The translations under genes were made by a program, and so were the position numbers. 64,000 nucleotides of DNA from Utricularia gibba. Its lineage: Eukaryota; Plantae; Magnoliophyta. The notes under the pieces were generated by a model. The model searched no databases, had not been told where the DNA came from, and saw nothing but the letters and a program-made list of their open reading frames with translations. Shown one piece after another: positions 13,833 to 64,000 of the stretch (within the stretch, counting starts at the first letter, position 1; every line of letters begins with the position of its first letter). The stretch spans positions 7,130,001 through 7,194,000 of the forward strand of contig CM007989.1 of NCBI GenBank assembly GCA_002189035.1, given 5' to 3'.

Positions 13833-16800
13833 TCATGCTTCAGCCAGATGCTCAAATTCCTTGCAGTTGGCCCCAACTTGACTCAGAGCAGAGACCAGTT
13901 TGGGCAATAGTTTGGCCAGCATTAACTTAAAACCAATGGAATTTGAATTTGCGCTCCTGGATTCACCAACATGAGCATCCCTTGTAAGTGAACCGATCAG
14001 ATGTCCCTTCATATATGCATTGCATGCCATAAGGATGTAAGGGCCACGCTTTCTGAAATGCTCTAGAATGAGCTCTTCGAAGCCCTGCATATATAACCAT
14101 GGAATTATGTTCACCTTGAGGCGAGAAGCATACAAGAGGGCTGTGTCGGAGGAAGCTTGATTAGATTACCTTTGGAGGCTTCCGCATTAGGTACATCATT
14201 GTCTTCAAATTCAACAAAAATGTATTTTCATTGTACGATAATGAATTCTTTTCCCCTTCAGCAGTCCCAACTTGTTTATCATAACCAGCTTCATTAAAAT
14301 ATGGCTTGGAGTTTAGCACTAGCCCCTGAAGAGATACCAGTACTTGGAGAATGCTCGAGGTTGATGGATCCCAAACCTCATTTCCTCTACCCGTCCAAGT
14401 GTTCAATAAACTCAGGCAAACTTTTCCTTCTTCATATAAATTTGGGTTAATTCTCCATCCTCCAGAATGGTAATACACTGACTGCAAACAAAGAAAGAAG
14501 TATGGGTAATAATTTAGATGTTGTGTCAACTGTAAATCCTGAAGATTAATCTTTGTTTTCATTTAGAGATACTGTTGTTAATCATAACTGGCAACAGAAG
14601 ACCAAAAGAAAATGGAAGACAAGGAGTAAACTTTGTGAAACAAATTTTATACGGAGAAGAGCCAGTGTGCAACGAAGATTAACTTATTGAGTAATGAAAT
14701 TCGAATACAAGATTAAAAAAAAACCACTAAGTAGCACTGAATGAAGTTCCAAAAGTTTGCAGAAAGAGAAAGAAAATTGTAAACACTGACTTACTGGGGG
14801 AACATCTGGATATTCTGGGGATAAAGAAAAATCAAAGAAAAACAGACCATCCTGATACGGAGTCCCATAAGCACCGACTATAACAGTCCTTAAAAGGTCC
14901 ATTCTATCCTCGTAGACACGGACGAATATACTACCTAAAAAAAGGCGAAAAATGTGACTAATTCGTTTTAATGATGCATCAAGGCATTGGGAGCAAAATG
15001 AGTATACCGGGTAGGTTGTTCTGAAGAATGTCCCAGTCTTTCTGAATCTTCTTGAGCCACTTTCTCGATGCAAAATCCTGCAAGTTTTGCACAAGGTCCT
15101 TCGATAATTGGAATGCAACAAAGTAATAAAATCCATTAATACAAACCTGGCTATGTGAACCAATAAAGTGATGATCTGATGGGTCTTTGATGATATCGAA
15201 ACACTTGAAGGTTAAAACAGATTCATCAAGTGAAGAAGTGTATGAATCTGGTGGTTTTAGGTTACAAAGAGTTTTGGAGATTTCCAGCACATCAGATGGT
15301 TGAGAAGCGCCTTTAGATGCAGCACTTAGTTTAGAGAGTTCAGTTTCCATATCAAAGCCTTTAGTACCAGAACCATCAGAATAAGATGTGTTTAAGGGTG
15401 ACTCATCAGGTTGAGAATCAACCTCGCTTTTGGCATCTGCATGTCCAGGATCTAAGCCACTTCGAGCTCTTGAAAATATTCCAGATGCTATTCTAGTCAT
15501 AAAACCAATTGCAGCCATGGGAAATGCAAGAGCTATGTTCTTTCCAGAATTTCCGGTGACCAAATTATCTTCTGTATCAGACTTCTGGTCAACATCTTCT
15601 GTAACAACATTGGCCTGTCAAAACGTGCATCCGATAAATAAGAGAACAGATAATAGCAATTGCAGTTACAATCGCAAATGGCATTCATCATGCACCTCCT
15701 CATTATTGGCAGAGTCCATATCATCTTCAACCGTTTCCCAACTGGCGGCATCACTGGCATTACTTCCAGTTGCAATTGATTCATCTTCATCTCGACCAAC
15801 AACATAAATCGCTTGAGGGCCAACCTACCATATGAAAAGAATATTAATTGTTTTTAGAAGTCAAATGAATAATCAGTATCTTTGCAGAGTTGGACATGAC
15901 ATATGATTACAACTGCACAATAGATCACCAACAGAAACTGAAAAAAGAATTACCAAGGATACCATGCCATCTGCCCAAGTAACCTCAATGTCACCACCTT
16001 TCAATCCTGTAATATTCCCAACCCATGACAAATCTGAAAACTCGTGAGTTTGTGCATCATCTTCATTTTCCACAGTATGGTGATCAGCCTCGCCATCTGT
16101 ATGTTGATTTGAACTTCCTTGTAGCATAGTTTCAACAGATAAATTTGAATCAACAGTTGATGAAATAGGCGCCAACCGGACAACTACATCACCATAGCAA
16201 TAATCATAGTCAGGATGCCCCTCTAGCTCATAAACACTGACAATCTCCTCTGTATCAAATTCTTTGGGGTCTTCTGCCTTAGCAACAGCCTTCAACCACC
16301 TGACACATGCAGTCTTATCTTTTGCATTGACACTTTGCACAACTCCAACACGTCTAGTCTCAATAGCATCATCACTATCAGAAGCTTTCTCCACCACATA
16401 CTGTTCAGCCACAAATTCATGATCCCCTGGATTTTCAATAGGAGCTAAAGATGCAGAATCAAGTTCTCTTTCTGTTGTCCCATCTTGCCAGATAACATCA
16501 AGCTTTGTCTTTATATTGATAATTTGAAGTGCCCTTTCAAAATTCTCTCTTTTCTTCCTAGCCTTTTTATCCTTCCAAGCAACTGATTTACGGATTTTTT
16601 TTCTAGTAAATATTCCAATCTCACGAACATCCTTTTTTGATCCCGAATTGTTGTTGCTAGACAGTGTCACAGAGTCATCATTCTCTAATGTACTCGTACT
16701 CCCCTGGAAAGCTTCTGAAAAATGTTCCAAGGATTTGGAATTTTTGTATTTTTCCATTGACAGCAACACCTCTGAATCTGACTCGTCAACAGTTTCAATT

Positions 16801-50584: not shown

Positions 50585-51629
50585 GGCGGTTTGAAAATTG
50601 AAGGTGCGAATCCGAGAAGAAGAAGAAGAAGCGTAGGAAGGACGATTCTCTTTTTATACAAGGGAGCAATGGCCAAGTGTGCTGGCAACAGCTGCAATGC
50701 AACCGCTTATTATTTATATGGCCTCCAACCCCGCTTTTATTATTATTTATTATTCCGTGTAATGCTGAGGTAGTATATACATAAAACGACGTCGTACCCC
50801 TACCCAAATCAACACCTAGCGTACGGTACACCACCCCTACAGAATCATACACTGCTAGAATTTAGAAAATGGAATTTTTTATTTTTATTATTTATGATAA
50901 TAAAAATTATTTCAGATACTATTTAAGAAAATTCTGATGCTCTGAAATGTCTGAATGACAGCAGTGGCTCATCATTTCTCGTATTAAATTTTATTCGGTT
51001 AATATTTTAATATTTTTATAATTAAAGAAATAAACATAATAATTCTGATGCTTTGATCCGTACCCTCGTGAATCCTCGCCATTTTTACAGGCAATCATGC
51101 AGAAGTGTCACGGCGGGGCGGGATTTCAGTTGATTTTTATCCTGAAAGTTTCCCATTTTCTGCCTTCTTCTTCGGCTGAATGCATCGGGTGGAAGGAATT
51201 TGCATGTAATTTATATGGCTCACACATGCGCGGATTCAGAAACACACATACTTGCGTACGTTTATACGCTCCACGGAGAGATCTGCTTGACTCAGTCGTG
51301 GGGTTAGTTTTGTTTGTAACTGTTTGTTTTTGGAGATAATTTGAAAGGTTTCGCTTTCACATTTCCTTAATTCTACTGCATTGGGGGCACCCTTTTCTTT
51401 AGCGGGTCTTTCATTTCTCGTTGACGAGATTTTTATGGGCTTTTCTTGTTTGTAGTTCTGGACTGGTTTTGGTTTTTTTTGTTTGTTTATGTGTTAATTA
51501 GGGGTGATTGTGTGTTTTTTTTATCTTTGATTCCAGAGTTGAGTGATGGTGATGAGGATATACGGGATGATGAAAGGTTTGTGACAATTGGGATACTGTG
51601 GGAGAAGCGAAGAGGGATCTTGTTGTTTC

Positions 51630-54315
<2,686 letters not shown>

Positions 54316-54784: not shown

Positions 54785-55222
54785 TCAGTGGATGTTGCGG
54801 CGCTGTTTCTGGCCGGAATCGGGGCAGAACGTGTGGGGAAGGACGAGATCGTCGGCGCCGAGGAGTTTCCGGCTGAGCTGTGAAGTGACCTTGTAGAGAA
54901 TATGGCGCCAGCTGCCCTTATTGTGAGTACCTAGGGCGGCGGTTTCCTCCTCGTTCATTTCCAGATCCACGGCGAAGGAAGGCTTCCGGGAGAGGATCCA
55001 GCCCCATCCGAGGTCCCACCACTTCCTGAGAGAGTTCCCGGCGCACTCTCCAAAGGAGGAAAGCGAGGTGGAGCGGCGGAAGGCCCCAATGGCAGCGGCG
55101 GGATGAATGTTGAGATTGAGGTCGAGGGAGGAGAGGCGACGGCGTAGGCCGCCGGTGATCTCGGATTGGGAGTGTGAAAGCGGAAGCGAGTGGCTGCTCC
55201 GGCGGCGGAAGACGGATGCCAT
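54785..55222 (-). CDS. Small uncharacterised plant protein (145 aa), single exon
   Basis: MASVFRRRSS...LRKWWDLGWGWILSRKPSFAVDLEMNEEETAALGTHNKGSWRHILYKV. GC-rich, coding-like composition, and the Trp-rich motif resembles an unnamed plant family I recall next to CPK5/6-type genes. Confidence 0.75.
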   Translation of the reverse strand: MASVFRRRSSHSLPLSHSQSEITGGLRRRLSSLDLNLNIHPAAAIGAFRRSTSLSSFGECAGNSLRKWWDLGWGWILSRKPSFAVDLEMNEEETAALGTHNKGSWRHILYKVTSQLSRKLLGADDLVLPHTFCPDSGQKQRRNIH

Positions 55223-55665
55223 CGCCGTCGGTGGCGGTGAAAACGGAGGAGGAGAATGTGAAAGCGGAGTTGTGTCGTTCCCAGCTGCAAGACACCCTGT
55301 TCGATTTGTAGGCCACAACTGGAAGAAGTTTCACGTAGGCCCCACTGAGACACGTCACTCTCACTCAGTGGTTTGATCCACCGACATGATAACTAACCTT
55401 TCCCATAATATTCTTTATAATAAAATAAGAATATTTGTATTTTTTTAAAGAATAAATATTTTTGATAATAAAACTATTTTTTATCATATTTTTCAATTTA
55501 CGGTAGTTAACAAAAGAGGAATTAATGATGAAGAACAAAACGAGCCACAAAATATGAAAAATCCGCCACCTCAATAATTATTTGATTGTAATAATTGAGG
55601 AGAAATGGAGTTGGGCCGGGTCATGCGAGAGCTATAATTGGGCCAACTTATGGGCCTGGATTTGT

Positions 55666-56153: not shown

Positions 56154-59121
56154 ATGAATCAAAGTATGGGTTCCTGGTAGATTTCGAAATCTTCAATGAG
56201 AAATACCGTGGAAGTTTGATTGCATTCAACGTTGCTGTAGGTGAGTTAATTGTTAGTTTGGGGCTTGTTTTCAGGGGCGTACGAGGAAAATAGTGGTTCG
56301 AACTCCAGTTCTCCTTCTGATTCTAGTCAAGAAACACGTGATGTTCAGGGTGAGATGCTTCCGGTCTTTTTCAAACTCGAAGACATCAGTAACAAAGTTA
56401 GGGTGAGTGGATGGTGTTGACGCACTTCTATTTGTGGACCATTTTTTCTGGTATTTTGAAGGTAACCTTCGTTTTCCTCCAGCTTCTTAGAAAGGAACAT
56501 GAGAATTTATGCAGTGAAATCAAAGGTGTAACACTTGATTCTTTGATCGGTTCTGAATGCTCCACTGCCCTATATGATATTTGTGAGTAATCTCTATTAA
56601 AAAGATCTTTAATAGATGCATGGATTGTGTTTCAGTTTGTGATCGCTTCACTTTTGCTGTGTTCTAGCCAAGAAATACGTTGCGGATTCAGAGTTACTGA
56701 AGAAGAAGTTCCTTGAAGAATGCACAGAAAGAAAGAAACTCTACAACAAAGTGATTGAGCTCAGAGGGAATATTAGGGTCTTCTGTCGGTGTAGACCAAT
56801 GAAAGAAGATGAGATTACCAATGGTTCCACGTCAGTCATCGACTTTGACGCATTCCAGGAAAATGAGCTGAACGTCATCTGTTCTGATTCTTCCCGAAAG
56901 CATTTTAAGTTTGATCATGTATTCAAGCCTGAGGACAGCCAAGGTAGAATGGGTGCAAATTCTTCAATTTTTTCTGTCATTTCATGTTTTTATTATTTGT
57001 GGCAATGCTAAATGATTTCACTATATTGTTTTCCAGATGATGTCTTTGGTCAAACTCTGCCGTTGGTGACCTCTGTCTTGGATGGCTATAATGTGTGCAT
57101 ATTTGCTTATGGGCAAACTGGTACTGGAAAAACTTACACAATGGAAGGAACACCAGAAAATAGGGGGTAAATTACCGCACTCTCGAAGCGCTCTTCAAAA
57201 TATCTGAAGAGAGAAGCAAATTTGTGAGATATGAGCTGTTTGTCAGTATGCTAGAGGTCTACAATGAAAAGATTCGAGATCTTCTGGTAGACAGCTCCAA
57301 ACATCCGGAAAAAAAGTAGGCTTCTATTTCTGATTGCCCTTTGTATCCTTTAAGTCGTTGTTGGTGAGCTATTTTTCTTATAAGAAAAATGTTGATGCCT
57401 CCTATAAAATGCAGGCTGGAGATAAAGCAGTCAGCTGAGGGTACCCAGGAAGTACCTGGACTTATTGAAGCACGAGCTTATACCACAAGTGATGTTTGGA
57501 GTTTACTACAATCAGGAAGTCACGCAAGATCTGTCGGTTCAACTAATGCAAATGAACTCAGCAGCCGCTCTCACTGGTGAGTGTGAGGATATTCTGCTGC
57601 CCAGATACTTTACTCAGGTTATTCAAGGTTACCTATCACTGTCGGTACTGTGTATAAAACTCCTTACTCCTCCCACCTGCAGCTTGTTAAGAGTGACTGT
57701 TGTTGGGGAAAATCTGCTTAATGGGCAAAGAACGAAAAGCCATTTGTGGTTGGTCGACTTGGCGGGAAGTGAGCGTGTAGGAAAGATTGAAGTTGAGGGT
57801 GAAAGGCTGAGGGAATCTCAGTTCATTAATAAGTCGTTATCAGCTCTTGGAGACGTGGTTTCTGCCCTTGCATCGAAATCATCTCATGTACCATACAGGA
57901 ATTCCAAGCTTACTCATCTACTCCAAAGTTCGCTGGGTGAGTCCTGTGTCATTATTTATTCTCATTGTAGCTAGACAACAAAATGAGATGTAAAATGAAA
58001 CTCGTTTGCAGGTGGTGACTGTAAGACTCTCATGTTTGTTCAAATCAGCCCCAGCTTAGCTGATCTTGGAGAAACTCTTTGCTCCTTGAATTTTGCAAGC
58101 CGCGTTCGAGGAGTTGAACATGGACCTGCTCGACGGCACCCAGATCAACATTCCGAACTCCTTAAATACAAGCAGTTGGTATGAAGCGAAATTCTCGTCG
58201 TTGTGAACCATTCATTCGCCTGCTGGATTTCATTCTTGAATGTCTTGATTGTAGGCTGAAAAAGCAAAACAAGAGGAGAAAGAAACGAAAAAGTTGCAAG
58301 AAAATGCTCAGTCTTTGCAGCTGAGACTTGCTGCTAGGGAACAAATTTGCAAAAACCTTCAAGAGAAGGTACTTCAGTGCGAATTAGTTAGTGAAATGAT
58401 TTCAATTTCTTATACCCTCCTGTTCATCATCATTATTATTGTTATCTATCAGGTGCGTGATCTCGAAAACCAGTTGGAGAACGAAAGGAAAGCAAGAATG
58501 CATCAGGAGAACAGAGCTCTGGCCGCAATCTCTACTCAACCGAAATCCATACCAATGCCAAACATGTCAATGGACAAGAAGCCACCGCTAGGACCATCAA
58601 AAGCGAGGCTTCCCCTCAGAAGAATCTCAAACTTCATGTCACTTCCTTCTCCTGCTGCAGCAAAGAAAACCCGGATGCCGTTCCTCCCTTCTGTAAGTGA
58701 AGGGAAGGAGAACGCCTCATCAAGACCAAAGCTCACCATCACAGCAAGAAGAGGATCGATTGCAGTAAGGCCAGCTACGACAAAAACCTCTCAGGTGGCT
58801 ATTCAGCCTAAAAGAAGAGCCTCCATTGCAACCCTGCAGCCAGGTTTAGCAACTCCACTTTACAGCTCAAGGCCTCAACGGAATGTAGGCAGGCAATCTT
58901 TTGTTTGGGATCCACAGAGAGTTTGGAGAACCTCCAGGTTATCTTCACCCAAGATGATCGAAGCAACCCCGCTTGGCGGCTCAATCAAGTTCAGAGAAAG
59001 CCCTCCTTCCAAGCGAGACAGTGCTGCCTCATGGAAGCTGAAGCATCCAACAGTCGTTGCATTGCAGAAGAAGAAACTGATTTGGAGTCCCTTCAAGTCA
59101 AAGGGCTTGAAGAAAACATAA
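56154..59121 (+). CDS. KIN14: Kinesin-14 motor (KIN14S-like); 5' end uncertain; one apparent 1-nt frameshift at 57163-57167
   Basis: Exons approximately 56275-56403, 56483-56582, 56668-56943, 57037-57315 (contains the shift), 57415-57576, 57683-57936, 58012-58178, 58255-58368, 58453-59121. Motifs: [15 protein letters not shown]-loop [51 protein letters not shown]. Confidence 0.9.
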
Positions 59122-60436
59122 TATTTCCTATCTCTGATGTTGTCCCTCCTCCTCTTTCATTGGCATTACTTTCTCAACTCTGGGAACACACTTGAATTCA
59201 GTGCTAATGTTGTCTGCTATGATGGAGAAATGGATCTTCGCACTTTCTTGCAATCACCGGAGACTTTGAGCCGTACAGATTCCGATGATGAGGTGCGGGA
59301 GATGGATTCGGAAAGCACACCGACTTTCTTCTCCTACTTGCAGCTGAAGAATCTCCAAATTTGGACCAATTTTGTCAAATTCCAAACTCTACTCGAAACG
59401 CGTGTCACTCGGACAACTTTAGAAATTAACGAATTAAATAAAATCGGATTTAATTCATTTTCCATTTAATTATAACTTTGTTTATAATGGATCAAATCAG
59501 TTTCCACTTATTATTTTTACAATTAAAAATGATTCTAAAAAATACCAAGTTTCAATTTTGGACGGTCCCACACGTGTGTTGACCTCAGTATTCAAAGTTT
59601 TCGGTCATCTCGCCTAACTTTCTGGTTGTGTCTGTGTGTCGTTTCAGTTGTCGGGATTTTATTTACTTGGTCGTTGGTCTGAATCCAGTCTTGTCCTGGC
59701 ATTTGATTCCTTGTTATCGAACAATGCCAATGCCAATGCCCCACAAAACATCAGCCATCACTTCATACCATACAGCTATCTTCTTGGAATATTTGCCCAT
59801 CCACAGTGAAGTTTGCGCAAGCTGGGAGAGGATGCTGGCGTGTGTGTGTGAACTTTTTGGCAGCTGGAAGCAGCGAGGAGTAGGGACGGGTCGCGTCAAC
59901 CCAGACTCAAGTGCTGTCGGTGTGACCACGAGACTTTAAAGCCAGGGCGCTAGGACTTGGAGAAGAATCCAAATAACGAAGAAAAGAAAAAACCCAAATA
60001 CGGAGAGACAGAAAGCGAGAGAGAGAGACAGAAATATCATAATAATTATCAACGAATCAAAGCAAAGGTGTGACCGTTGCTGGTGTGAAGATAGAATTTC
60101 CAAGTATGTGTATTGTGTACATTGGCTCATTCCAGCCAGAAATAATGTGTTTGTTTGTGAACATCAATTACCCAGACTTCCAAGTACGTGTATTGTCATA
60201 GCAGCTGGTTGTAGTTTCTGGTTAGAGAGTGGGAAATAGAGGAACACTGGGGTTTCCTGGTTCACACATTTGACCATGTAAACTGCCATCTTCTTCATTT
60301 GGAACAGCAAAAAGACCAAGACCGAAGATCCTGTCTAATACCAAGACTCGTGCCTATAAAAACCCCTCTTGTTCATCCATTTTCATAGCATCAACTACAA
60401 AAAAAGAGTTTCCTTTTTTGCTGTGTAATCAGAAGA

Positions 60437-60613
60437 ATGGATGGACCAAGGAGAAACGGCAGCAGCAGCAGCAGCAGTTCAGGGAGCAAAGGAAGCGTTT
60501 TTCCTAAAAAGCAGGACAAGGTGATCACAATGGTGGTCAAGAACATCGCCAAGGGGGCCTCCGATGCTTGTTCCAAACCAAAAAACAATGGCAGGGTGTC
60601 CAACCACCCGTAG
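60437..60613 (+). CDS. Small basic peptide, copy A (58 aa) of a tandem pair; below the ORF-track cutoff
   Basis: MDGPRRNGSSSSSSSGSKGSVFPKKQDKVITMVVKNIAKGASDACSKPKNNGRVSNHP*. CCTATAAA box at about 60353-60360. Paralogous to 62514-62771. Confidence 0.75.
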   Translation: MDGPRRNGSSSSSSSGSKGSVFPKKQDKVITMVVKNIAKGASDACSKPKNNGRVSNHP

Positions 60614-62513
60614 CAGCGTCCTGCGGGAATGGATTGGTGTAGAAGACGTCTGCTGTGGTTGTTCATATGAGTTCTCATCAGGTTCTTTTCAGTATAGAAA
60701 ACGTGTGATACTTGTAACCCTCTTCTTACTACTACTAAGGCTGCCTATGTGTGGTTTGTCCATTTAAATTTTCATGAGTTTAAATTATTTGGGTTTAGAC
60801 AAATCCAAATATATAGATATACCTATATCATTACAATCCCTTGTGCATACATGAGAATATAATTATACTAAATAATCATTATAGTCGTATAATTAGTATA
60901 ATTATAACTACATATCAAATAACGTAATTTATTAAATCTACTATAAACCAACCTTATAATTTCGTATTAAACAAGACTTAAGTTAAAAAGTTAAATTGTT
61001 GAATAGAATCTTGGCATCTGCTACAAACCCTAAATCTCATTAAATAAAAAACTCACTATAAAGGTTTTCAAAACACATCCAAGTCAACCTGTCGGGTTAT
61101 ATTTCTTGAAAATAGCTTTTCGATAATATTATTGAAAAGTAAAATTTTTTTTAATATTTTTATTATTTTAGCAAACAACAAAACCAATATATAATTGGAT
61201 TTTCATTATTTTCGATTTCAAAGTTAGATATGGGGTGGAAGCACGTCATCAAGTCTTATCTTGAATGAGATCCCAAAACATAGAATAAGAAGGATTCAAT
61301 GCCACAAAGCTCAAATAATAATATTATATTATTAAAAGAGAAGAATATTCCAAGTCAGCGTAGAGTCAAGATTCGTCAAAACTTTCGACTGTGAAGAATA
61401 AACCGACTTTGGACACGTATACAGAAAAAAAGAAAAAAAAGAAGAAATCGACTTCAATTTCTGATTTGAAAGAGAGTAGTGGGTACGTTATATAACTTTA
61501 ATTTATTAAAATGATTTTATTATAAGGATTTCAAATTATATTTATTATTTAGTAAAATAAAAAATTCAAAATCTTAAATAAATATTGTATTGATTCCAAA
61601 TTATATTATTTAATTTCTAAATATTTATTTTATTAATATAATCTTAAAATTGATTTTTTATTCATGATATAATACACATACATAAGGACAAGGATCTTCA
61701 AGGTTTTACATGTTGAAATTATTGCAATTTCTTATTGGATTTTTTTTTCATTTTCTTTGGTGAAATTGTTTCTTGGTAGTTTTTTATTATTATTATTATT
61801 TCGAGCCATTTATTGTTTTGGAAGTTGAATTGGTCTTAGTGTGGTTCTAGGGTATGAGACATAGTAAAATATACATGAATAGTACATGTAAATATAATAA
61901 ATAATAGTAAAATATACAATTTATTAATATTTCTCTTTTTCCTATATATAAAAACACTCAATTAACCCTAATCTACTCTACCTCATACTATAAAACTCAA
62001 TTTTTCAATAATATAATTTAGGAAAATTTTATTATATAATAAATAAATATTATTATTAAAAAATACGATACTTATCCTAAAATAGTATATTTTATAACTC
62101 GAGATAACCCGTATTCCATATCCACATATTAACGTGTTTTCATGTACTGTACTTGTACTCTTCCTTGGTGAAGGGCTGGAGAAGATGCTTGAGGATGAAG
62201 CTAAAGAAGAGCCAGCAATGCATTCATTATTTCCTGGTCTACTCCAAACAATGACTGACTTTGAACTTTGCGTGGGGGATCAGAGATATTCCTTCCTCGC
62301 CCTCCTCCTCACCTCCCACACACAGACCAGACTGCATGCTTCTTTGACCAGGGAATAAAAACACCCCCACCCACCGCTGCTCTGCAACGGAACCTTGGAA
62401 CAGCAGCGGGATGTCTGAGTGAAGAAGAAGATTGTAGTGCTTGTTCCTCTTCCCTCTCCCTCCTATAAAAGGCTCTGCGCCTGCTCTCGCCTTCTCAGAC
62501 CTGACAGACAGAA

Positions 62514-62771
62514 ATGGAGGCACCACCCAGCAGCAGCAGCAGCAGCGCGGGGAGCAAGGGAAGCGTCTTCCCCAAGGAGAGGGAGAAGGTGATCACAATG
62601 GTGGTCAAGAACATCGCCAAGGGGGTCTCCGACGCCTACTCCGAGCACAAGAACAAGGGGAAGGTGACCCAGAACAGCCCTGATTCGGTTCGCCTTCTTC
62701 GCAAAATAACTTCATCTGGAGTGGAGCAGGCGACTGCCCCATTTAGCAGTGATCATAATGGTCCATGTTAG
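62514..62771 (+). CDS. Small basic peptide, copy B (85 aa) of a tandem pair
   Basis: MEAPPSSSSSSAGSKGSVFPKEREKVITMVVKNIAKGVSDAYSEHKNKGKVTQNSPDSVRLLRK... CCTATAAAA box at 62462-62470. Shares a 40-nt identical core with copy A. Confidence 0.75.
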   Translation: MEAPPSSSSSSAGSKGSVFPKEREKVITMVVKNIAKGVSDAYSEHKNKGKVTQNSPDSVRLLRKITSSGVEQATAPFSSDHNGPC

Positions 62772-64000
62772 GAATTAGGATCTTCTCATCCAAACCCTTT
62801 TTGTTTCTAGGAAAACATTTAATAATCAAATTTATTACTAAATATGGACCATTTTTATTTTTAAGAAATTATAAAGTCTCATCTTTCAGAATTAATTCTT
62901 GAACATTGCTCTTTTAAGAAGATATATTAAACAAAACCCTAGATTTTTCGAAAAAGATTAAATGGAATAAACCATACATATGAGATATTTCTATATTACA
63001 TTTTAGTTGCCTTATATCCCACAAAGTCTATCCAATCTGATAAAAAGAGGTGAATAACATGTTGCAGAATTTATATGATGGTAAAATGATCATTTAAAAT
63101 TATATATATATGGTATCCATTTTTCTCATATGCTTAAAAAACAGTGTCTACTTTTATAATACAGCATACATCACCAATTTGCTCGTCCACAACAAAATGT
63201 AAGAGTGGAACGAAAACACAAATACTTAGTTGAAGTGACAAAGGGGTTCTTGCCACATACAGTTTGGGGAGGCAATATTAGCAGCGACATAGATTATCAT
63301 ACTGATGAATACAGTTTCAGAAGGTGAAGGCATGAGGGTGTTTGGTTACTTTTCCGGCGGATATTGAATGTTTTACTATCTCTGTTCGGTCGGAGCCACT
63401 GACGGCCCTCGCTCAACGATCACTCCTCCCTCAGTACGCTGTCGCAATTTTCCAATTTTGTTTGTAAAATGCGCGCTGCTTGAGTGGATAGAGAGATTAG
63501 GGTTCATTTGATGAACAATTTCTACTTATTCCTGGTAGGGGATGTATTTAAATAGATAAACCTCTTCAATTTAGTATGGGAACTTTTTATTGAAAGAAAA
63601 AAATATAAAATTATGAGGATTGAATGTTCGAAATAGACAATATAATGTAATGTGAACGTAAGGCGTGACATTTTTTATATTAGATCTAAATTCATACTTA
63701 TGCCATGTGGAATAAGATGACATTGGGTGTTTAAAAAGGATAGACTATAAAGTTAAGTATGTTGTTATGATATATCACATTAGTTACGGATAGTGGAGAA
63801 GATGTAATTAAATAGAGAAGTTATTCTAACTTTACATGAAATTTTTTTCTAAAAAAAATGTAAAATTATAAGAATTGGATTGTTAGCTCATGACAACTTC
63901 TAGTTAGATTTCCCTACTTGGTTTCAAAAAACTGAAAAAAATGCCTTCTTTTTAAGGTTGCCATAGCAGCAGTAGGGAGTCCTGGGTGGGCTTGTTGTGT

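Follow-up and report, generated by a model that had tools for sequence, protein, structure and literature searches.

Location and layout of the two genes

The DNA analysed here is a stretch of 64,000 nt from Utricularia gibba (GenBank assembly GCA_002189035.1, contig CM007989.1, positions 7,130,001 to 7,194,000 of the forward strand), referred to below as the window; all coordinates are positions within it. Towards its 3′ end lie two short open reading frames (ORFs) in tandem on the + strand, copy A and copy B, whose relationship and products are the subject of this report. The coding sequence of copy A (60437..60613) is an intact ORF of 58 amino acids (aa) with the canonical length and end of the protein family described below. 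That of copy B (62514..62771) is an intact ORF of 85 aa, with a core nearer to the family consensus. Both proteins have a poly-Ser tract encoded by (AGC)n and the core GSKGSVFPK-x3-KVITMVVKNIAKG-x-SDA. The distance from ATG to ATG is 2077 nt, and the spacer is AT-rich (GC ~24%). Copy B carries a C-terminal extension of ~30 aa (62679..62768, +) that is found neither in copy A nor in the aligned single-unit relatives; at the DNA level, the extension and the 3′ flank of copy A are only weakly similar. No third copy is present inside the window, a weak tblastn match at 16542-16685 being Lys-rich low-complexity sequence without the motif.

Three collinear blocks are common to the upstream regions of the two copies. 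The most proximal is a TATA box, CCTATAAAA, at 60353..60361 (+) in copy A and 62462..62470 (+) in copy B, 84 and 52 nt upstream of the respective ATG. The second, the 11-mer TTGGAACAGCA, is the longest exact upstream word that the copies have in common, and lies at 60299..60309 (+; −138) in copy A and 62395..62405 (+; −119) in copy B. The third, the 8-mer TTTGACCA, is found at −168 in copy A and −171 in copy B; it contains a W-box-like TTGACC, at 60270..60275 (+), 167 nt before the ATG of copy A, and at 62344..62349 (+) in copy B. The shared TTGACC hints, speculatively, at WRKY or stress control of expression. In both copies the ATG context has a purine at −3 (A in copy A) and G at +4. The duplicated unit, ~450 bp, consists of promoter and coding sequence, and the two copies are read as a tandem pair of paralogous genes, each with one exon and a TATA box, that encode small basic proteins. 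Copy A is missing from the ORF track that accompanied the initial annotation, possibly because its 58 aa fall short of the 60 aa that the ORF lister requires by default.

A near-duplicate pair of elements is also found upstream of the copy A promoter. ccaagtatgtgtattgtg (~60100) and ccaagtacgtgtattgtc (~60180) are ~80 nt apart, and the second of these, within window positions 60100-60200, contains an ACGTGT core.

Divergence between the copies and coding constraint

BLASTP aligns copy A with copy B at 70% identity over 37 residues (E 2e-16), and a DNA repeat finder reports a 142-nt direct repeat of 82% identity between them. The alignment has 49 ungapped codons, of which 25 match exactly, 14 carry replacements and the remaining 10 show purely synonymous differences; five of the synonymous-only codons fall within GSKGSVFPK. 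Differences at codon positions 1, 2 and 3 number 8, 6 and 17, respectively, and the synonymous bias is significant (Fisher P 0.0007). The pairwise ratio of nonsynonymous to synonymous divergence (dN/dS, omega) is 0.15-0.23 at a dS of ~0.8 (Nei-Gojobori, NG86). Random placement of the same 31 substitutions on copy B gave no more than 14 amino-acid changes in only 0.13% of simulations (P 0.0013) and created a stop codon in 63%. Of the six frames, the sense frame alone is stop-free in copy A as well as copy B, and omega is lowest there. By these measures both copies carry a signature of purifying selection on the sense frame.

The initial annotation, made from the sequence alone, had described two small ORFs ~2 kb apart, each with its own upstream box, a poly-Ser tract and the common core, and each of these features is present. 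It had also counted 9 synonymous codons in a 40-codon alignment, which is compatible with the recount of 10 in 49. Its five synonymous-only codons in GSKGSVFPK are recovered, and its stretch of 13 identical codons lies within a 40-nt identical run discussed below. For the proposal that both copies are constrained it had suggested a dN/dS estimate as a check; the values obtained bear the proposal out.

Could the ORFs be untranslated, the locus giving a non-coding or antisense transcript that has been duplicated and the codon pattern arising as a side effect? The antisense frame that shares third positions with the sense frame has an omega of 0.33 and, in copy A, remains open over 95 aa. However, this omega is as expected from the coupling of the two frames, and there is a stop in that frame at copy B; an antisense ORF was rejected on this stop together with the lowest omega being in the sense frame. 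In addition, the sense protein and its start and stop positions are conserved across four asterid orders, with E values down to 1e-32. A non-coding origin of the pattern is therefore highly improbable, and both copies are very probably real, constrained genes and new divergent members of the family to which these relatives belong.

Relatives in the asterids

A HMMER search with a profile of the two copies against 1.84 billion representative sequences, with matches of any length allowed, returned two small plant proteins (P0001 and P0002; 62 and 77 aa) at E ~2e-4. One of these clusters with an Olea europaea 'hypothetical predicted protein' (CAA2969679.1/A0A8S0QV76). Two iterated profile searches, with family profiles built from alignments that include the window copies, extended the set to ~36 relatives of 46-80 aa, with a best E of 1e-32. 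The relatives are from Lamiales (Olea, Forsythia, Handroanthus, Sesamum, Phlomoides, Buddleja, Dorcoceras and Salvia), Solanales (Withania and Ipomoea), Boraginales (Lithospermum) and Asterales (Centaurea and Lactuca), with further unnamed sequences from Logan, ENA and JGI. Examples are Handroanthus impetiginosus CDL12_10857 and CDL12_18726, Phlomoides rotata ACS0TY_028177, Dorcoceras hygrometricum F511_05024, Salvia splendens SASPL_148185, Centaurea solstitialis OSB04_029134 and a protein of Withania somnifera. All named entries are 'hypothetical' or 'uncharacterized' except three Forsythia models, which are labelled O-acyltransferase or Ser/Thr kinase. The only precomputed Pfam domain among the relatives is the leucine-rich repeat (LRR) part of two fused Forsythia models. 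Three unnamed clusters from Streptophyta (63-66 aa) were matched in the ESM Atlas, and none has a function attached.

Other searches were negative. Pfam gave nothing for either copy and nothing above threshold for 26 family members, with sub-threshold compositional signals only (Dermaseptin and Aureocin). A word-index search with copy B alone was blank, a PDB sequence profile search returned only designed helical proteins, and when metagenomes were scanned with the family profile, none of the 42 pattern matches was confirmed. A literature search on the motif strings, the locus tags of the relatives and Utricularia small ORFs found no paper.

The family alignment comprises 26 sequences. The module starts with M-[DN]-S and a Ser/Gly-rich stretch, continues with the core (K)K-G-[ST]-V-[IFLV]-P-K-x4-[HK]-V-[SI]-T-M-[MV]-G-K-K-I-A, and ends with a Lys/Ala-rich segment followed by K-N-K-G-K-[VI]-N-P-x-N and the stop. 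Within the core, P, V and T are invariant in the 26 sequences, and S, K, S and M are near-invariant. Both window copies read S-V-F-P-K-x4-K-V-I-T-M, which conforms to the family motif; the I in place of S in VSTM is unique to them. Copy A agrees with the family in length, helix and tail throughout (58 aa, predicted helix 29-45, KNNGR and then stop). Copy B agrees in the core and has the extra tail of ~30 aa. The copies are, on the strength of these alignments, divergent members of an asterid small-protein family that is present in databases only as 'hypothetical protein'.

The initial annotation had noted a loose resemblance to a plant SV(F/I)P...V-x2-M motif. This motif is real and defines the ~36 asterid proteins, with the spacing SV[IF]P-x5-V-x2-M. 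No characterised family was matched in the Pfam, PDB, HMMER and profile searches, but relatives exist across the asterids, and the genes are not an isolated novelty, as these relatives have already been deposited under the name 'hypothetical protein'.

A longer spliced gene was also considered. An AG|GTG sequence follows the KN-x-G-[KR] codons in both copies, with an acceptor-like site downstream. Copy A and the relatives nevertheless terminate in frame at this point, the end of copy A being that of the family, after KN-x-G-[KR]-V-x3-4. As the start and stop of copy A coincide with those of the family, a longer spliced gene is unlikely, and this reading was dropped.

Multiple units are frequent in the family. 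Database proteins with two or three units are found in Handroanthus (P0006), Centaurea (P0030 and P0037) and Lactuca (P0032), and several species, including Olea and Forsythia, have multiple copies on one contig. Given these multi-unit proteins and the several copies per contig, tandem amplification is typical of the family. In three Forsythia proteins (P0011, P0016 and P0017) a full unit is attached to unrelated sequence, and we read them as gene-model fusions. The longer Handroanthus matches P0008 and P0027 likewise appear to be complete units extended by gene-model fusion or by a wrongly placed start.

As a separate observation on the deposited records, models that fuse two or three units, or a unit with an LRR or other sequence, look like annotation errors around tandem arrays.

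Duplication and asymmetric evolution

A maximum-likelihood tree groups the two window copies in a 100/100 clade, on a long stem of 1.36 changes per column, and so puts the duplication within the lineage of this plant. Copy A has a much longer terminal branch than copy B (0.38 against 0.046). At replacement sites copy B mostly retains the family consensus (E, R, E, H, K and K), and at 9 of the 10 synonymous-only differences copy A has A/T and copy B has G/C. Thus, the divergence is directional and not merely synonymous. Copy B has retained the ancestral core and gained the ~30-aa tail, and copy A has evolved faster, its synonymous sites drifting to A/T.

The same asymmetry could mean that only copy B is functional and that copy A, under relaxed constraint, is decaying into a pseudogene, its open frame being residual. 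The long terminal branch of copy A is in keeping with this, as are the at least six replacement sites at which copy B has the family consensus residue and copy A does not; the A/T state of copy A at the synonymous-only sites would be expected if codon or GC pressure had been lost. Yet the frame of copy A is intact and has the canonical family end, and its TATA box and ATG context are retained. Moreover, if all changes are assigned to the copy A lineage, so few amino-acid changes are seen in just 0.13% of the simulations, a stop arising in 63%. Decay of copy A is accordingly an unlikely account of the pair, and two constrained genes that have evolved at different rates are preferred.

One part of the alignment departs from this pattern. 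A block of 40 nt, 60518..60557 (+) in copy A and 62586..62625 (+) in copy B, which comprises the codons for KVITMVVKNIAKG, has no differences, compared with third-position differences at 17 of 43 degenerate codons overall. An identical run of this length has P 6e-5 by permutation with uniform placement of differences and P 0.0025 when only third positions are permuted. In copy A, the GC content at third codon positions (GC3) is 12/13 within the block vs 26/45 elsewhere (Fisher P 0.023). The block is probably a short gene-conversion tract copied from copy B into copy A.

Selection at the nucleotide level, for example on a small-RNA target or an RNA element, would also leave the ~9 synonymous sites of the block without change, and the permutation result for third positions is in its favour. 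Against this, the block in copy A is GC3-rich like copy B and unlike the remainder of copy A, there is no Rfam match in 59000-64000, and no complementary sequence occurs elsewhere in the window. Short gene-conversion tracts between nearby tandem paralogues are commonplace, and the copies here are 2 kb apart. Nucleotide-level selection is thus an improbable explanation and conversion is favoured.

Synonymous sites outside the 40-nt block are near saturation.

Predicted structure and possible mode of action

The family architecture is read as a disordered Ser/Gly-rich N-terminus, the linear motif, one basic amphipathic helix beginning at V-[SI]-T-M, and a basic KN-K-G-K tail. AlphaFold2 predicts a helix at residues 29-45 of copy A, with the remainder disordered. 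For a typical family member (P0002) the predicted helix spans residues 26-54, with a mean predicted local distance difference test score (pLDDT) of 63 and the remainder likewise disordered; in these models the window copies are without about two turns of the helix. The initial annotation had suggested an amphipathic helix at KVITMVVKNIAKG, and the prediction agrees: the hydrophobic moment of this segment is 0.56-0.58, which 1-3% of shuffled sequences attain. The 18-residue moment of the helix is given as 0.56-0.60, attained by 0.1-3% of shuffles. The proteins are basic, with isoelectric points (pI) of 9.5-10.5 and grand average of hydropathy values of −0.93 and −0.65, and have no Cys, no transmembrane segment, no signal peptide and no fold.

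A protein without a fold of its own would act as a small adaptor or regulator on a conserved partner, with the SVxPK segment, in extended form, and the initial helical turns as the docking site. Such docking is suggested because P, V, T, S and M are conserved there, in contrast to the remainder of the helix, which is variable in both length and sequence; linear motifs coupled to a helix that folds on partner binding typically show this pattern. From the alignment and the predicted helix this mechanism is a tentative proposal, slightly less probable than even.

Ranked next, and unlikely, is action by the cationic amphipathic helix alone through generic binding to membranes or acidic surfaces, in the manner of a hydrophilin, a KIN/COR-type protectant or a leaderless antimicrobial-type peptide. 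The high hydrophobic moment, the pI of ~10 and the presence of a single helix in an otherwise disordered chain are all consistent with such a role, and one relative scores 18.8 bits on the Dermaseptin model (cut-off 20.9). That match, however, is compositional and confined to 1 of 26 members. Conservation is residue-specific before and at the start of the helix and weakest in its Lys/Ala-rich body, and this body has been partly deleted in the window copies; the absence of a signal peptide is a further point against the helix acting alone.

As a whole, the pair is best explained as real, constrained, lineage-specific paralogues of the asterid family with a motif-plus-helix architecture, with a probability of about 0.75. 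Several observations weigh against this explanation. Both copies differ from the family at near-invariant sites (S to I in VSTM, G to V and H to K) and share a deletion of 7 residues in the helix; given these differences, the function of the window copies may have shifted. The exact proteins are not in a collection of 15 billion proteins, and the selection test involves a single pair of 44-49 codons. AlphaFold confidence for copy A is moderate, with a mean pLDDT of ~60 and 70-75 in the helix, and the partner-binding mechanism is pure inference. As to the promoter, the W-box is only a 6-mer, and its sharing could be mere descent.

If the pair is what it appears to be, two seemingly unannotated genes are added to a very compact plant genome, as members of a family that is conserved in at least four asterid orders and apparently undescribed so far. 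The sharp motif offers precise residues for mutation. The two copies also show how unequally tandem duplicates can evolve, in this case probably with gene conversion over a short stretch. Small proteins confined to particular lineages are no rarity, and nothing is overturned by the pair, whose function is still inference.

Neighbouring sequences

From ORF translations, two genes are recognized upstream of the pair on the + strand: a calcium-dependent protein kinase (51588-54315; kinase and EF-hand exons) and a kinesin (56751-59121). Neither the Ser/Lys-rich C-terminal ORF of the kinesin (58294-59118) nor the next ORF (59137-59466) has a Pfam match. Between the kinase-like and kinesin-like genes lies a 177-aa ORF on the − strand (54788-55318) with a Trp-rich stretch (WWDLGWGWILSRKPSF...DLEMNEEE); it has no Pfam match at E 0.01.

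Comparison with known small-protein systems

The initial annotation had likened the predicted products to small interaction-type microProteins. A protein counts as a microProtein if it is homologous to one domain of a larger protein that has several. Those of the LITTLE ZIPPER, MIF and KIDARI type are small, have one interaction module and no enzymatic domain, and plausibly bind a partner, as here. They have a larger multi-domain parent, however, and none was found for this family by HMMER at any length, Pfam or word search, a weak test with a shallow profile and a length-limited word search. In the strict sense the term does not hold, as no genuine larger protein with the module was found and the longer matches are units fused to unrelated sequence.

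The proteins PROPEP and prosystemin likewise have no signal peptide and are small and basic. In the present family, in contrast, the conserved part is N-proximal and not at the C-terminus, and the window copies are without the NPxN end. The C-terminus ...G-K-V-N-P-x-N of many relatives may resemble the C-termini of Pep peptides. As for secreted peptide hormones, no signal peptide is present in the window copies; the N-termini MDGPRRNGSSSSSSS and MEAPPSSSSSS are polar and have no hydrophobic stretch. KIN/COR6.6-like proteins and dermaseptins are also short, with a Lys/Ala/Gly-rich amphipathic helix, no Cys and no fold, but no sequence relationship to the family was detected.

RVxF, KxGS, 14-3-3 and calmodulin-anchor patterns, compared by eye, do not fit the window copies.

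In SxIP plus-end tracking signals, an [ST]-x-[IL]-P core is embedded in disordered sequence that is basic and rich in Ser; one of the four positions preceding the core is basic, and the flank has no acidic residue. The family shares this type of core, in a basic, Ser-rich, disordered stretch with a preceding basic residue. The canonical core is found in 22 of 42 family units, 17 of which also conform to the flank rule. However, neither window copy has the [ST]-x-[IL]-P core: F occupies the I/L position in both, as in 13 of the 42 units, and the copies read S-V-F-P. In addition, acidic residues follow closely here (PKERE), and conservation continues into the helix. The SxIP motif occurs in partners of EB1 (PMC5288973). 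The family could conceivably form a hitherto unrecognised class of mini-regulators, so far known only from asterids, in which motif and helix dock on one conserved hub, with an SxIP-type signal for the microtubule end-binding protein EB1 as the most specific candidate, although the proposal is very doubtful. If it were true, these would be the smallest plant plus-end-tracking proteins, and the tandem pair would be a lineage-specific derivative with a shortened helix.

The closest counterpart of the window copies is the asterid 'hypothetical' family itself. It has the same size class and order of parts, its start and stop positions are as in copy A, and tandem or fused copies are frequent. The differences lie in VSTM, G, H and a full helix in the family, compared with VITM, V, K and 7 fewer helix residues in the window copies.

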